Numbered from the whole stretch's first letter, positions 9,858 through 17,800 are shown. The stretch: DNA of 55,766 nucleotides, filler included, from Platydemus manokwari (GCA_037951405.1; 5 parts of 5 records of this genome joined end to end with filler, not necessarily neighbours in it), one strand, 5' to 3'. Notes: generated by a model not told the origin, from the sequence alone. Program-made: numbers and translations.

Positions 9858-12800
9858 ATGCTTAAATTAGCTGCGGAACATTATTTGAAGTCCCTTGGAG
9901 ATAAATATTTTATTCCGGTAATAATGTTTTCATGAACTCCAATGATAGAAAATTTCATAGAATCCCGACTATGCCGAGTGGATAAATTGTGAATGTTTGA
10001 GTGTCGCGATCAAGCGATTGCCGAAACATTTTTGGCAAAGGCCAAAATATACTTTTAATAATTTCGGTTTGGATGATTTACTGGATTCACCTTTACCAAA
10101 AGACAAGTCATCGTTTTTCAAAGAACCCGAACGTATAACGGCAACTTATTCTCACAATTCCAAGCATAGTGTCAATAGTAAAATCGGTGGCAAAGTCATG
10201 TCAATAGTTTCAATGGATGTATCCACTCAGGATTGCATAAAACTCACTATCAATTTCGATGAAATCATGAAACAATCGATAGATTTTAACGCTGTCAATA
10301 ATTTTTTGTCGACAAAGTAATTTTCAAAATACGATATTTTTAATCGAAATTATTTTCTGTCATTTGTTAAGAAAAATAAATCTCAACAATAAACAACTGC
10401 ACCATCTTGCCCAGGACAAATACAACGTGATATGTTTGATTACGCAATATATCTACATTACGGCAAGAACCGAAATAAAAGTCAGCGTTAGTATTGATGT
10501 CAAAGAGTCCGCCAAGGCGAAGGATGCTCAGGTATTCCAAAATTTTGTTCATGGTGGATAATTTTTTAATGTTACGTAACTGGGGACAACGGATTGCGCA
10601 ACGCAACATCGGTTGCACAATATTTACTCAGATAGGACTTATTGTATAACAACCGCAGAAATAAATAGTTAAACAATAGAATTATTGAATTTCCCATTAT
10701 CTGAATCTAAGTGTCAAAGATATTTCTGACGATAAACACAAATTTCCAAGTTGAATGAGAAAATATTATTTTTTTGAAAAATTAATTTATTGATTTCTCA
10801 ATGTCCGGCTCCTGTTTCTTGTATTCCATTGATGGATATGACAATATAGATTCATTAACCTTAGATATGATGACCTTTGGATTTAATTAATTTTCATTTG
10901 TCAAATCATTTGACCAATGAAAAATCTGAGTATGATATGAGCAGCTTGTGTGTCCGTGGGGATTGTCGATTACATAAATTTTGCTGGTGCCAGCGATTGT
11001 CAATTATTGATTCTATATTACCGATTTAGCACTACATTGCATTCAATTCCATTTCTTCCAACATATCTGGACTTCATCTAACAGAGAACAATAAAAATTA
11101 AAACAAATTCATTTTATAACGATAATTATTAATAGACCGAATAAATGGCATCACATTATCTTGACTAATTATAACTCGATATTTACCCTCCAATGGTCAA
11201 CCGGAATGATATTTGAAAATGTGAGATATTCTATATTGTCTCTCTGATTCAAAATTGATGTTGCTGGTGTTATGAATGTTATGTTGTAAACGGAACTAAT
11301 GAATATTTAAAATGATCATAATAATATAAATAATAGTAATTATAATAGGAACAGTAGTTTTTATTATTGATCGATAAATTAATAACAAAAGTATGATAAA
11401 TAAAGTGGAACGAAAGTCTTATCCAATTGAAAATAATATTTATTTCATCAATAAAGAAAACATTCAAATTGAGAAATGTAAACAAAACATCATTCGCCTG
11501 TAAATCTGATTTGTTGAAAATAGTTACCTTAAGGTTTACACACTTTTGTCAGCGTTCTGGAAGTTGTTTCATGTCGATTTCATAGAATCCCGCAAGTTTT
11601 GAAGGGAACCACTTTCAAATAATCCATAACCTCTTCAATGGAGTTATACGTTTTTCCCACGACGTCAGTTATCCATAGGAGAAAACAGATAATAGTCTGA
11701 AGGGGGCAAGGTCTGGGGATCATGTTGGATGCACTATTATCGCAAAACTGATCTCAACAAGCTTATCTTAAGTTAAACGTTCCGTAAGCGGTGGAGATAT
11801 TTCGTGAAGTAAATGGAAGTTTTCAAAATTGTTTCCACACAACCAGTGCCCTGTTTTTCGAATTACATGTACGCGTCTGTCCAACTGAATGGAGTAAATT
11901 TCTGCGTTTATGTTCTCACAGATACAGTACCGGTGCCAAGCACGGAGTTAATATTATTCTCAATTGCTGGGGCATCCATTCCATCTTTCCACAAAAAATA
12001 CATCAGCTTTTTCAAGTCGCTTCGCTTAAACTCCATCATATGCCACAAAATAATATTTTCTTATCTGAAACCATTATTTAATTATAAAATAAAAATTAAA
12101 CATTTAAAAAAGGATGCAATAATGCACTTTAACTAAACAATTCTTCATAAAACATTGAAATTATTTAGATTTACAGACGATTGATGTTTTGTTTATATTT
12201 CTCAATTTACATATTGTCTTTATTTTATATCGGACAACACTTTCATTCCAATCCTGTATTATTATTTATATATTTTTTTTATTAATTTTCCTTGTTTTTT
12301 GAAAGATATATTTTGACATTTAAGAAATAAATATGACGCCATGTCAATAATATATCATAAATTTCAGTAAAATTTTAATTGGTGTGTATCGATTATTCCA
12401 TAATTTAATTTTTTTTATTGTGTGATCAAAGGAAATATTCCATTGAAAAATTTCTAAATAATCAATATCAAACTCATATTCAAATATCAGATATTAAATC
12501 TGTTTAAAGATCACCCCGAGAGAATGTCCAAGCTCGAATTTTAGATCAATTTAATATAACCAAATGATAATAATAATTATTATTATTGGTTTATTTTAAA
12601 TCCAGCTAATGAAGAGATTAAGAATATATCAATATATTTGAATTTCTTTAATAATATTTTATGATAATATAATAACACCGGTAATAATAGCACTGGTATT
12701 ATTAATAATTTATGATAATACAGTCAACCCTGATTAATATGAACCCTGTTTAATATGAAGGTAGTTTAATATGAACATTTAGGTCAAATTTTATTGGAAA

Positions 12801-14677
12801 TCATATGGTTTCATAGGAAATTATGTTTTATAATTCGAACACTGTCTATTTTGAACAATGAACACAAAATAATGCGAAATAAATCAATAAATTAATAGAA
12901 TCTTTGAAAAACATAAATTCAAAACGAAAGATAAAGAATTTCAAAATCGAAGAGAAACCGAATTTGTTAAAATTATTCGATGAAGATAAATGCCGCTCTC
13001 AACGATTTCTTTCATCAAAATACAATCTTTCATTGAGCTGTATAAATAATCTAACGAAATCTAAAGACTCCATTTTGAATTCAAACTTGAAAACTAAACA
13101 AAACGAAAAACACATTTACGCAGTGGATATCAAGTTGATGCCATCTTATATGAATGATTTCAGATTATATCAATAATAATTATATCAATAACACGTTTAA
13201 TAATCGATATTCAAAATTAATATAAATATGTTTTAAGAAAAGTTTATTGTTGGCTTTTAAGAAAATCTGTTGCGAGTGTGACTGATTAATGTAATATCTG
13301 ATTCTATCACAGGTCTCTGCCGGTGAATCTACAAATGTCCAATCAGATAATGTCAAATCCATTGTGTTTGAAAGTGGAACAAAACTGGCATATGATTTCG
13401 TTGAATTGTTTATCGGAAAAGATGGCAATATTGAAGTTGTAGATCGAGAAGATAATCTTAAATGGTATGCAATGATTGTCAAATCTCCGTCACATAGAAC
13501 AATGCCAAATTATTATGCAAGTATCAAGGCTAATAAACAGAACGGTGATAATCCCGTCAAGAATACAGCAGGTCAGTGAAATAATGTCGATATTATATTT
13601 GTGTTCATCAATTATAATTTGATAAAAATGGATTATAACAAATCAGTATTATTGATTATAACAGTATATTGTGTAATTGTTGACAAATATATTAAAAATA
13701 ATAATAATCATTGAGATCCCTTGAATCGATAAATAAATCAGAAAATCAGTCTCATCTTTACAACCACATTAGTAATTATGAGGATTGTAAAATCAAATTA
13801 ATATATAAGTGATCATTTTGAATCGAAAATATATTGATTTTAAAAAATATCAATTATCAATTTAAATTGTTGGAATATTTTGATTAAATATACTTTTGTG
13901 TGTTTGAAATTCTTAGATTCGTTAAATTACTATCACATTAAGCTAAAGTAATTTTCAAGATAAAATAATTACATGATCTCCATTGATAATTTCATTATTA
14001 AAATATTCATTATAATTCACAGTAATCCATCAATATATGATAGTACATTCGAGAGAGAAACGCATTTTTGTCATTACTATATTCAAAGTATATTTATTTT
14101 TATCGTAACGTGCCTACAATTAGGTGTTGAATAAAGTACTTCGATAATCATTTATCAATCGTGTCTACACCAACTAGTCATTTTACTTGTTGACAAGTAA
14201 ATATTATATCTTGAATATATTCTTGAGTTTATTGATCAGTTATTCGATTCAAGGATAATTCCTGATAAATTGAACTGTGTTTTTCATTTTTATCTGTTAA
14301 ATTATCAATGGAATGAATTGAATTGAAAAAGATTGGCTTATTTTTTGTATCGTTTGACATAAATAATAAATGTTTACAATATTATATCGTTAATATTATT
14401 TGCCAGTGAAGACACCGGATAAATCAAAGAATCCCAATCAATCATTCAACAATAAAATCAGTGTGGATATCACAAAAAATCTCCTCGCGCTTGCTATTGA
14501 TGAAAAAGAAACTCTGAAGCAATTAGAATTATTAGTAAGTTTCATAATAATATTGTCGCATTGAATTCTCTCATGACAAACCAAAGAGATATTTCTCTTA
14601 CCAATTTTATCGTAAGTCTCGTCAATTGTAATTAACAACGCAACCACAGACAGACCGCATACTCGAAAACTCAGAAG
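9858..14677 (+). CDS. GSDME: Gasdermin (GSDME/PJVK-like): complete N-terminal pore-forming domain, linker and start of the C-terminal domain; 3' end lost in assembly gap
   Basis: Exons 9858-9917 (MLKLAAEHYLKSLGDKYFIP), 9961-10316 (NPDYAEWINCECLSVAIKRLPKHFWQRPKYTFNNFGLDDLL...FDEIMKQSIDFNAVNNFLSTK), 10372-10531 (KINLNNKQLHHLAQDKYNVICLITQYIYIT...KDAQ), 13313-13571 (VSAGESTNVQSDNVKSIVFESGTKLAYDFVELFIGKDGNIEVVDRED...), 14407-14534 (...ITKNLLALAIDEKETLKQLELL) and probably 14650-14677+ (TDRILENSE...). All junctions are GT-AG and in phase with no stops. Matches human GSDME motifs LSLVTKKKRFWCWQRPKY, TINLRNPVLQQVLEGRNEVLCVLTQKI and QVSATEDGNVTKDSNVVLEIPAATTIAYGVIELYVKLDGQFE. Confidence 0.92.
11399..12256 (-). 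mobile_element. Internally deleted mariner (DD34D) element with unusually long (~110 bp) inverted repeats, inside gasdermin intron 3
   Basis: Minus strand reads MMEFKRSDLKKLMYFLWKDGMDAPAIENNINSVLGTGTVSVRT, then a deletion, then NAEIYSIQL...FHLLHEISPPLTERLT*DKLVEISFAIIVHPT*SPDLAP(fs)SDYYLF...KQLPER*QKCV, with 34 residues between the decayed HDN position and the final D. 11400-11508 is an imperfect inverted copy of ~12166-12256. TA at 12257-12258. Confidence 0.85.
12721..13180 (+). mobile_element. pogo/Tigger (CENP-B type) transposon 5' fragment inside gasdermin intron 3
   Basis: TA|CAGTCAACCCTGATTAATATGAAC terminus with repeated TTAATATGAA subterminal motifs. ORF KRKIKNFKIEEK...SQRFLSSKYNLSLSCINNL is CENP-B N-terminal HTH-like, followed after a frameshift by KRK...VDAILYE*F. 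Confidence 0.75.
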
Positions 14678-14777
14678 NNNNNNNNNNNNNNNNNNNNNNN
14701 NNNNNNNNNNNNNNNNNNNNNTTAATTAATTAANNNNNNNNNNNNNNNNNNNNNNNNNNNNNNNNNNNNNNNNNNNN
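14678..14777. other. Assembly gap with artificial linker (44 N + TTAATTAATTAA + 44 N)
   Basis: Directly visible. The linker has stops in all six frames. Confidence 0.98.
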
Positions 14778-14899
14778 GATGGCAAAACGTTATTGATAAT
14801 GACGGACTTTATTTTGAGGGATAGTTGTTGTTTTAAATAAATTTATGTACAACACATTTTTATTTCCAATTTTGTCCGCGAACTTTATTTACAACCTAA
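14778..14899 (+). mobile_element. Mariner element 3' end abutting the gap
   Basis: Encodes WQNVIDNDGLYFEG*, a typical mariner C-terminus, followed by TIR ...TTTGTCCGCGAACTTTATTTACAACCTAA and TA at 14900-14901. Confidence 0.85.
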
Positions 14900-17800
14900 T
14901 AATTAAAGAAGATATAAATCGATAATCTTAGTATTTCATGTTTGAAATACAAATCAATATTTATACGAGTAAGATCTGTGAACAGTGCACTGAATTCCAA
15001 CTTTATCAATAATAAATGTAATCAAAATTATAAAAAAATAATAAATTCAATCGATATTAGTTATTCCGCTTAAATGTTAAAAATAAAGATTTTCCTCCAA
15101 CCAATTCATAATTTATCTCACGAAATCGTTAATTAATCCGTATCAACTAGTCCTCAATATCAAATGAAATTAATGTGTATTCATTAATGATGTGATGCGA
15201 TTTAGTCACGACAATGTAACTCCATGTGAAGACAAAGCCGGTTTATTTATCATTTCGTTTCGTACCGATTAATAATAAAAGAACTCAATAGAAATGAGAT
15301 GGATTAATTCTATTACAGATTCCATTTATTATTTCGAAAATCCTTAGGAGATTAACCATCAATATTTCGGAATAATCTCTTGAACCGTATTAGTCAAAAT
15401 ACAAGCACAGGAGCAAGGCAAACTTTTACATTGTCAAAAGATTCGTTAAAAAATTAAAATGCTCTGCCATTTTAAATGTAATTTTTATCAATGATAGAAA
15501 CCAATAAAATATTCACCGAAAACATCAACACTATTCCAATCATCAAACCCAATATCTCTCGATTTATTTATCATTACTTTAATCATTAAAACAAAACACG
15601 TTTTTGTTTATCCAATTAAAATGGAATAAATATTAGAATTTGTAAATTACTTTTAATCGAATTTATAAACGATCAATTTATATAGTTTTATCAACACCAT
15701 CTTTGATAAAGCCGAAATCCATTGTCTAAACAAACATGGATTTATCTATCAACAAAATTTATCAAAGTTTATTTGAGCCTTTTCATCATCCGATGGCATT
15801 TTTTTGAAAATTATTCAAAATTACGAAATATTTGATAATATGATTGTTTTAAATTGTATAACTCCAAAAAGTTGCCATCACTGAAAGCCAGACATCAATC
15901 AATATTCAGTGGCATGATTGACATCAAAACCGATGGCATCATTCAGAAGCGAATTTCCATCATTGTTGAAAACCAATAAGATTGATAGAAAGAATGTGAA
16001 GCCAAATCAATAATTTTGATATTTTCTAATAAATGACCAATGGTCAGGTCATGCGACAATGTTGATAGTACTACTTAAACGTTGATATCTCTCATCATGA
16101 CAATGATGGAGTACGGTGGCCAGATTTGTTATATAGTGATTATATTATAATTAGGTCAGTGCATTCGGTTATCATTAATTGATATCTCGCATCTACTAAT
16201 TGTTAGCAGTAATGAGATTATTTTATAAAAATGTATTTAATGAAATTCAAATATAAAATTCATCAATAATTAAAATAATAATGATATTATTGATTGATAA
16301 ATAGATTATTATTCATAATAAAATAATTATTTGAATATAAATTCAAAAATAGTTATATTATTAATGTAAGTATTAATATCGTCGAAGTTACAAGAAGTTC
16401 CAGAATGAACCAATGAAAACTTAAACATTGGTAGATCGGTTTTGTTTGTAGTACTTCCTACTCATCAGTATCAGATCGATAGTATCGATTAGAATGCACA
16501 ACGTTATTGTTTATTCTTTGATCGATTCTTTACTACCAGGCCATTTCACTGACTTTCACTATCATTTAGAACTTGTTGATTGAAATATAATTATAATTGG
16601 ATTTTAGTTTTACGATAGTATATCCTTCACAGTTGCTACATCTCTCAATCTGGGACATTCAAATTTTAACCAATGGATTAATTAAATTTAATTACATATA
16701 ATTAAATGCAGTCGATGTAGCTCATTCTTTGTCACAAATCTCAGAAAAGTTCTGAGAAATGTAATATTAGTTAATCGTGGTGAATAAAGGCTTAGAAAAT
16801 CTTAAGCTATTATAAACGTCAAAAAATAAGGTCGATAATTGTAATTTGAACTATTTGTATATAATGAAACAAATGGACGTGAAAATCCCTTAATTTTTCA
16901 TACACAATTATGTCTGAACCCTTCAGTAAAAGAATGAATTAAATATAGAAATTATATGGGTAAACATTGATAGAAAATGTGAATATGAAAATCATCTCAA
17001 CATTTTTCTCATTGTAATAGAGATATTACACTGATGATTTTCTTCAATTACTTGTCAATTCAAACCAATATGAGCTTAAAATATTGACTAGTTTCGTCAA
17101 GTGGTGAAGAATCACATAAAGTTAAAAAACAATTTTGAAAACATGAGATTTATCGATTCTACACAATAACGGAATGAAATTTTTTAATAGCGAAAAATAT
17201 AACGAGTTGAAAATTAAATATTCTATTGGTTAGCCAATTGGATTCATCTAAATTATCATTCTAATAATCTGTGAAAATCTGCAAATGCAATCATAGAATA
17301 GCCTCGCCGAGGTCATGTTGGTAGCACATATATTAATAAAAAATGTCTATGAAATTGTCAATAAATCGTGATGATAATTTTCATCAAATTAGTCATTTAA
17401 TAATGTTTATCAAAATCCGACTGTCCCCATCAATACATACACCACTTTTTCTGTCTTATCCAATCGATCCTCTGATGAAAAACCATCACTCAATTAAATA
17501 TTTCGTCAACAGAAAAATAATTCCCTCAGTAATGGATCTATCGATACTTAGTGAAGCAATCAAATTCGACTATAAGCAATAATTGAAAACTGATCTCAAA
17601 TAAATTAGAAGTTTTTAGGTGAAATAATAAATTTATTTTGTTACATTGGTAAATTGCCCGAATAAAGACGAAAGAAATTTATTCTCAAAGCTTAAACAAC
17701 ACTATTTTGATACCAAAAAAATATTAATTCTGATAAAGCGGGTGTACTCAACTCTAAAAGCATTATTAAAACTGTCATGATCGATTATTGTCAATGACAG

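Follow-up and report, generated by a model that had tools for sequence, protein, structure and literature searches.

The gene described here lies on one piece of the stretch of DNA analyzed (the window), contig G000:C1415867, which is 14,677 bases long with 27% G+C and comes from an assembly of 911 Mb in 1.99 million contigs. Five exons on its plus strand, at 9858-9917, 9961-10316, 10372-10531, 13313-13571 and 14407-14534, join into 963 nucleotides (nt) that form 321 codons with no stop, and each border of the model is GT-AG. The predicted product is a gasdermin, a member of the family of proteins that act as the executioners of pyroptosis. We consider it likely that the window contains the first two-thirds (the 5' part) of a genuine and probably functional gasdermin gene of the GSDME/pejvakin-like invertebrate type, one of a small family in an AT-rich flatworm genome, with a mechanism that we infer.

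An initial annotation of this DNA had proposed canonical splicing into a stop-free protein of at least 321 amino acids (aa), built in part on three open reading frame (ORF) fragments beginning at 9997, 10364 and 13364. All three fragments are on record in the ORF list (9997-10320, 10364-10561 and 13364-13579), and both the splice borders and the open frame agree with the proposal. For exon 2, the fragment at 9997 stands, but the start does not: the ORF list's first TTG (9997) was replaced by 9961, which follows the acceptor tttcatAG. Two other acceptors for this exon were rejected. The one at 9979 keeps the frame but drops six residues, NPDYAE, that both paralogs share and that P0001, the closest relative, largely keeps (the paralogs and P0001 are described below). 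The one at 10002 yields stops.

Exon 1 (9858-9917) carries the start codon and residues 1-20, which correspond to the N-terminal helix, and ends at the donor GTAATA. In the alignment to the gasdermin profile it reaches position 1. It is 75% identical to P0001 residues 1-20 and is conserved in the paralogs on contigs C1142882 and C1447966. The upstream region and 5' untranslated region (UTR) before it (9728-9857) are 92% identical (119/130 bases) to the upstream region of the paralog. Exon 2 (9961-10316) encodes residues 21-139, with its last codon split, and contains both a basic and aromatic beta1-beta2 loop (10012-10050, residues 38-50) and the first predicted hairpin region (10135-10257, residues 79-119). 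The second hairpin region begins in exon 3 (10372-10531, residues 139-192), which is 49% identical to P0001 residues 138-192. Intron 3 (10532-13312) measures 2.8 kb and is inflated by high-copy repeats. Exon 4 (13313-13571, residues 193-279, last codon split) holds the end of the second hairpin region, the last predicted strands of the pore domain (13379-13441, residues 215-235), a DRED motif (13442-13453, residues 236-239) and the start of the linker. Exon 5 (14407-14534) supplies residues 279-321, in which the linker ends and the putative first helix of the C-terminal region follows (14460-14534). This exon is 58% identical to P0001 residues 293-318 and ends in phase 0 at the donor GTAAGT. 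Only the start of intron 5 (14535-14677) follows. Because the contig stops at 14677, 143 bases past exon 5, most of the C-terminal half is absent from the window.

While Pfam was run on single exons only, the joined 321-aa protein was scored against a custom hidden Markov model (HMM) built from 12 GSDME/pejvakin-like proteins of cnidarians, amphioxus, hemichordates, nemerteans and one brachiopod, none of them from the window's own clade. The score was 165.6 bits (E 9e-53); residues 1-238 occupy HMM positions 1-235, and the exon junctions introduce no gaps. Shuffled versions of the joined protein (n=200) scored at most 3.3 bits against the same HMM; the match far exceeds chance. The end-to-end GSDME-type pore-forming domain claimed in the initial annotation was thus recovered over its whole length.

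The motifs named in that annotation are all present as well. The beta1-beta2 loop, KRLPKHFWQRPKY, aligns without gaps to the GSDME loop and to the profile and retains a W-Q-x-P-K-Y core; in a 16-sequence alignment, the columns for Trp and Tyr show little or no variation. Residues 79-119 and 172-211 coincide with the two hairpins proposed earlier, and both putative hairpin regions align in the profile; as read from the sequence, hydrophobic and polar residues alternate along the first strand of the second. The last strands, at residues 215-235, complete the set. Residues 1-238 are a complete gasdermin N-terminal pore-forming domain, closest to that of GSDME, an assignment that is supported by these alignments.

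A search of 1.84 billion representative proteins with a profile of exon 2, made from the window gene and two paralogs, produced 26 matches, all of them gasdermin-like. Ten of these were scanned against Pfam, and 10/10 passed the Gasdermin cut-off (nine of 450-483 aa, one of 303 aa). Most matches with listed cluster members are GSDME-like or pejvakin-like according to NCBI or UniRef, and the named ones come from Montipora, Nematostella, Branchiostoma, Saccoglossus, Glandiceps, Ptychodera, Lineus, Tubulanus and Lingula. Exon 2 also gave weak leads to gasdermin clusters in a protein atlas search.

The best match to the exon 2 profile (E 2e-33) was P0001, a 469-residue ORF on an environmental JGI contig of 1842 nt. 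This contig is intron-less and has 5' and 3' UTRs, and for these reasons it looks like a transcript. P0001 shares 47-50% identity with the window protein and is colinear with it over all four junctions, which provides cross-species, transcript-level support for the splice model. On Pfam Gasdermin it scores 55.8 bits (cut-off 25), and its best sequence match among solved structures in the PDB is the N-terminal domain of GSDME (GSDME-NT; E 8.8e-11, residues 7-233 against 7-234). In an AlphaFold2 (AF2) model of P0001, the N-terminal domain has a predicted local distance difference test score (pLDDT) of 70-89. The top 32 Foldseek matches of this model in the PDB are gasdermins, among them GSDME, GSDMA3, GSDMD, GSDMB and bacterial gasdermins, with the Trichoplax structure 8jyv as the best (template modeling [TM] score 0.73, root mean square deviation 3.4); the structural comparison suggested in the initial annotation thus came out in favor of a gasdermin, by proxy. 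Taken together, the joined-protein score, the exon 2 retrievals, the Pfam score and fold of P0001 and its match to GSDME-NT identify the window protein as a gasdermin.

A homologue search with P0001 as the query returned only P0001 itself, a result that is not evidence for absence from model planarians. In a tree of 15 N-terminal domains, containing no vertebrate sequences, the window protein and P0001 form a clade with 100/100 support. This clade sits on a stem of 1.79 changes per site, and its placement among the invertebrate gasdermins has support of 49/29.

The window gene is one of about three paralogs that make up a small, partly tandem family. A second copy lies on C1142882 (exons 1-4, 7156-8597) and a third on C1447966 (exons 1-3), while a lone exon 4 on C1805348 may continue the C1447966 copy. 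Exon lengths of 60, 356, 160 and 259 are identical across the paralogs, all splice sites are kept and the frames are open. Intron 3 of the C1142882 paralog is only about 500 bp long, compared with 2.8 kb in the window gene. Among paralogs, the ratio of nonsynonymous to synonymous substitution rates (dN/dS) is 0.31-0.45 in the pore domain and about 1.0 in the linker, and the same DNA read in the two wrong frames gives 0.9-1.0. A low ratio in the pore domain together with one near 1 in the linker is the pattern expected of a functional coding domain followed by a freely evolving linker.

Exons for the missing C-terminal half were found elsewhere in the assembly. On C1142882, exons at 1108-1233, 1292-1486 and 5415-5516 are colinear with the C-terminal half of P0001 and lie upstream of the second gasdermin gene, ending about 1.6 kb before the start codon of that next paralog; this position 5' of another gasdermin gene indicates that the genes are in tandem. 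The first of these exons (C1142882:1108-1233) begins in phase 0 where window exon 5 ends and matches P0001 residues 318-359. A second C-terminal exon set is present on C1388659, with the equivalent next exon at 1436-1561. Exon 5 is single copy in the whole assembly, and no end-to-end exact overlap of the window contig was found with C1142882, C1388659, C1447966 or C1805348.

How such a protein might act can be sketched from the way characterized gasdermins work, the part seen directly being the sequence elements of the pore domain. The full protein, of about 460 residues, would be kept inactive by a C-terminal helical domain. A protease would cut the linker, with the caspase-type DRED (236-239) as a candidate site; the freed N-terminal domain would then bind acidic lipids through its basic patch and oligomerize, and its two hairpins would insert as a beta-barrel pore. 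The predicted outcome is lytic cell death or the release of cell contents. The assembly contains 27 caspase-domain matches, and P0001 has a DxxD motif, DRSD, at the same position as DRED in the window gene. The remaining Asp residues of the linker (271 and 283) are not conserved.

Several observations weigh against the presence of a functional gasdermin that works in this way. The gene is incomplete on C1415867, where the assembly cuts it, and the sole sequencing run covering the stretch is DNA, has no splice joints in it and is silent on expression. Exon by exon, every match to Pfam Gasdermin fell below threshold; the Pfam check proposed in the initial annotation therefore succeeded for P0001 but not for the single exons of the window. 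Exon 4 alone gave E 0.079 against Pfam Gasdermin positions 193-228, and exon 2 alone gave E 0.4 against GSDME-NT residues 32-69 in the PDB (phmmer), although the positions of these two matches are colinear with a gasdermin. The fold prediction was made on P0001 and not on the window protein. In the C-terminal region of the window/P0001 clade, no similarity to Pfam Gasdermin_C was detected, scores against a custom HMM of the C-terminal halves of other invertebrate gasdermins equaled those of shuffles (hhalign probability 0.3%), and the region is helical in the AF2 model of P0001 with a pLDDT below 50. As this region has no detectable homology and a low-confidence fold, autoinhibition is assumed by analogy. 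Finally, the paralogs carry DREE and DRAE in place of DxxD, and DRED directly abuts the last strand. Loss in the paralogs and contact with the last strand mean that the motif may be structural; DxxD may either differ between paralogs or be no cleavage site at all.

The window protein can be compared with several known gasdermins. It resembles vertebrate GSDME/DFNA5 (PDB 9h5m and 9pe0) in the length of the N-terminal domain, the order of its elements, the WQRPKY core of the loop and a DxxD just after the pore domain, but identity is about 20%, His or Phe takes the place of the first Trp of the pair in the GSDME loop, and the C-terminal region of the window clade has no detectable similarity to that of GSDME. 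Trichoplax gasdermin (PDB 8jyv and 8jyw) is the best structural match of the P0001 model; its chains, however, are about 240-250 residues long, whereas the window clade has about 230 further residues. The Trichoplax protein is not known to have a C-terminal repressor domain. Pejvakin (PJVK/DFNB59) belongs to the same N-terminal domain family, and several of the nearest named matches bear its name. Its C-terminal part is short, in contrast to the long C-terminal region of the window clade, which is helical in the P0001 model, and to our knowledge no pore activity has been shown for pejvakin. The invertebrate GSDME/pejvakin-like proteins ("GSDMin"; PMC9355259) of corals, Nematostella, amphioxus, hemichordates, nemerteans and Lingula are alike over the pore domain end to end and have 450-480 residues. 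Unlike them, the window protein and P0001 group by themselves at the end of a long stem, the C-terminal half cannot be aligned, and the gene belongs to a small tandem family.

The upstream neighbor of the gasdermin gene is a multi-exon MYCBPAP gene on the same strand (window 1-9500, +), in which a single 81-aa exon at 1189-1434 (+), for example, matches Pfam with E 8.4e-11; the animal gene that the initial annotation had noticed on this contig is thereby named. Within intron 3 lies a mariner-type element of about 775 bp (11450-12224) that has lost internal sequence. It is bounded by 58-nt terminal inverted repeats at 11450-11507 and 12167-12224 that are 88% complementary, with an HTH_48 remnant on the minus strand at 11908-12048. 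A copy of this element at 80% identity is present on contig C1120441. In the one DNA run, read depth over the window repeats is 1,000-16,000, compared with 15-35 over the exons, which indicates that the repeat families of this contig are very abundant there. Intron 4 contains a further repeat of about 150 bp (approximately 13775-13925); more than 40 other copies of it, 80-87% identical, are spread over further contigs of the assembly, some of which carry two.

The assembly is a mixture of animals, with at least six different COX1 genes that share 64-86% protein identity. At positions where named reference COX1 proteins are conserved, two of the contigs (C1440324 and C1562679, here L031 and L033) read AAA as Asn and ATA as Ile, consistent with genetic code 9, while COX1 on C1514745, C1389203, C1344449 and C43481 reads ATA as Met and AAA as Lys, consistent with code 5. 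L033 breaks frame after 251 codons and may itself be a nuclear copy. Code 9 is also the echinoderm code, and the Echinodermata are well annotated. A 170-aa piece of the code-9 COX1 had no named close relative (best match 69% identical), and no close gasdermin homologue was found in any annotated animal, either with the exon 2 profile among the 1.84 billion representatives or in the P0001 homologue search. An echinoderm host is unlikely, because a close gasdermin or COX1 homologue would be expected among the named animals of so well annotated a phylum.

In planarians, trnE and nad6 lie downstream of cox1. The order on L031 is trnF-cox1-trnE followed by a nad6-like ORF, with the tRNA genes called in the mitochondrial mode of ARAGORN (the default mode found no tRNA). 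Code 9 is the code used for annotating triclad flatworm mitogenomes, and in the ancestral triclad order trnF is located between nad4 and cox1 (PMC12870015); the trnF-cox1 arrangement of L031 fits this nad4-trnF-cox1 order. The link from these mitochondrial types to the window runs through nuclear copies. COX1-like copies on AT-rich nuclear-type contigs (L037-L047; for example, C1120441:9111-9974 and C1124886:7656-8030) are closest to the code-9 types in 11/11 cases, and most have internal stops. The mariner-type element of intron 3 recurs on one of these contigs (80% over 832 nt), and other window repeats recur on two more. The host is very probably a rhabditophoran flatworm, and within that group we lean toward a triclad. 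The flatworm host suggested in the initial annotation is thus backed, indirectly, by mitochondrial code 9, the nuclear mitochondrial copies and the shared repeats.

Since the assembly holds at least six COX1 genes, four of them with code 5, the contig could instead derive from an animal other than a flatworm, possibly of a phylum with known gasdermins, in which case the phylum-level novelty would be lost. The flatworm assignment comes from mitochondrial types and repeats and not from a nuclear marker on the contig, and mariner elements can cross phyla. We regard this origin as distinctly unlikely given that all 11 nuclear-type COX1-like copies are nearest the code-9 types, that window repeats, including the mariner-type element, recur on the contigs with those copies, and that the repeat families are so abundant in the run with the stretch; the trnF-cox1-trnE-nad6-like order of L031, which fits the ancestral triclad order (PMC12870015), and the failure to find a close homologue in annotated animals argue in the same direction. 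A flatworm gene could also be a young pseudogene, that is, a recent duplicate that is unexpressed or decaying while another paralog does the work. Such a history would be consistent with the DNA-only coverage, with the 2 kb of repeats that have invaded intron 3 relative to the paralog, with a dN/dS of 0.9 for exon 4 against C1805348 and with a 3' end that lies outside the contig. It is nevertheless quite improbable, as the 963 nt have no stop, frameshift or splice-site loss, dN/dS in the pore domain is 0.37 in the correct frame only, 130 upstream nt are 92% conserved with the paralog, and the DxxD common to the distant P0001 is kept in the window copy and not in the others.

A third possibility concerns function rather than origin. 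The protein may have a gasdermin fold without being a cleavage-activated executor of cell death, either because it is non-lytic in the manner of pejvakin or because it is activated without linker cleavage. Activation of the latter kind, such as that driven by a redox change, by lipid modification or by a partner protein, has been reported for some ancient gasdermins. Pejvakin-like is also the annotation of many of the nearest named relatives, no caspase motif is conserved across the paralogs, and the sequence of the C-terminal region is lineage-specific. The weak placement of the clade in the tree, on its stem of 1.79 changes per site, is a further point in its favor. However, the C-terminal region of P0001, at about 230 residues, is GSDME-like in length and not short as in pejvakin, the basic and aromatic loop is still present along with the two hairpin regions, all of them under purifying selection, and the best solved-structure sequence match (for P0001) is GSDME-NT. 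We therefore consider this alternative unlikely and favor a functional gasdermin gene in a flatworm genome.

The gene is a new member of the gasdermin family, probably from a flatworm, with a function that we infer. A survey of 34 phyla reported gasdermins in Placozoa, Cnidaria, Bryozoa, Mollusca, Brachiopoda, Echinodermata, Hemichordata, Cephalochordata, Nemertea, Phoronida and Xenacoelomorpha; these 11 gasdermin-positive invertebrate groups do not include Platyhelminthes (PMC9355259). In the supplement of that survey, Platyhelminthes appears only in the phylum-icon credits, and the flatworm genera that we searched for were not found there (PMC9355259). A six-frame search of the gene's own genome with Pfam Gasdermin returned zero matches, which shows how such a gene escapes notice. 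A search of the full-text literature for a flatworm or planarian gasdermin found no describing paper, with most subscription journals outside the search; in the literature covered, the earlier statement that no characterized planarian gasdermin was known agrees with what we found.

The patchy spread of gasdermins in invertebrates underlies claims on where lytic, inflammatory death exists. A flatworm gasdermin family would fill a gap at the level of a phylum and would show that divergent genes split into exons evade HMM scans. Planarian biology would gain a candidate non-apoptotic death effector, relevant to infection, wounding and tissue turnover. This would be an advance of taxonomic and practical rather than conceptual value, as the type of protein is already well known. 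We also advance, tentatively, a broader proposal: flatworms may keep a fast-evolving tandem gasdermin family that has been missed by profile searches because of its short exons and divergence, with a conserved pore domain joined to a lineage-specific C-terminal domain and with DxxD in some paralogs only. If true, this would point to a pathway of regulated lytic death in planarian-like animals, in which the paralogs would answer to different triggers.

Two minor observations concern other contigs. C1124886, one of those with a COX1-like copy, also carries a retrotransposon-type ORF. Exon-sized gasdermin ORFs of 115-199 aa are present on unannotated contigs of one GenBank genome, L034 (GCA_022702875.1, JAKGBN010156617.1), and of two ENA assemblies, L035 (ERZ25070786) and L036 (ERZ26222911). 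These ORFs are nearer to the exon 2 profile (E 8e-10 to 6e-9) than any named gasdermin is and may represent further members from unidentified invertebrates.

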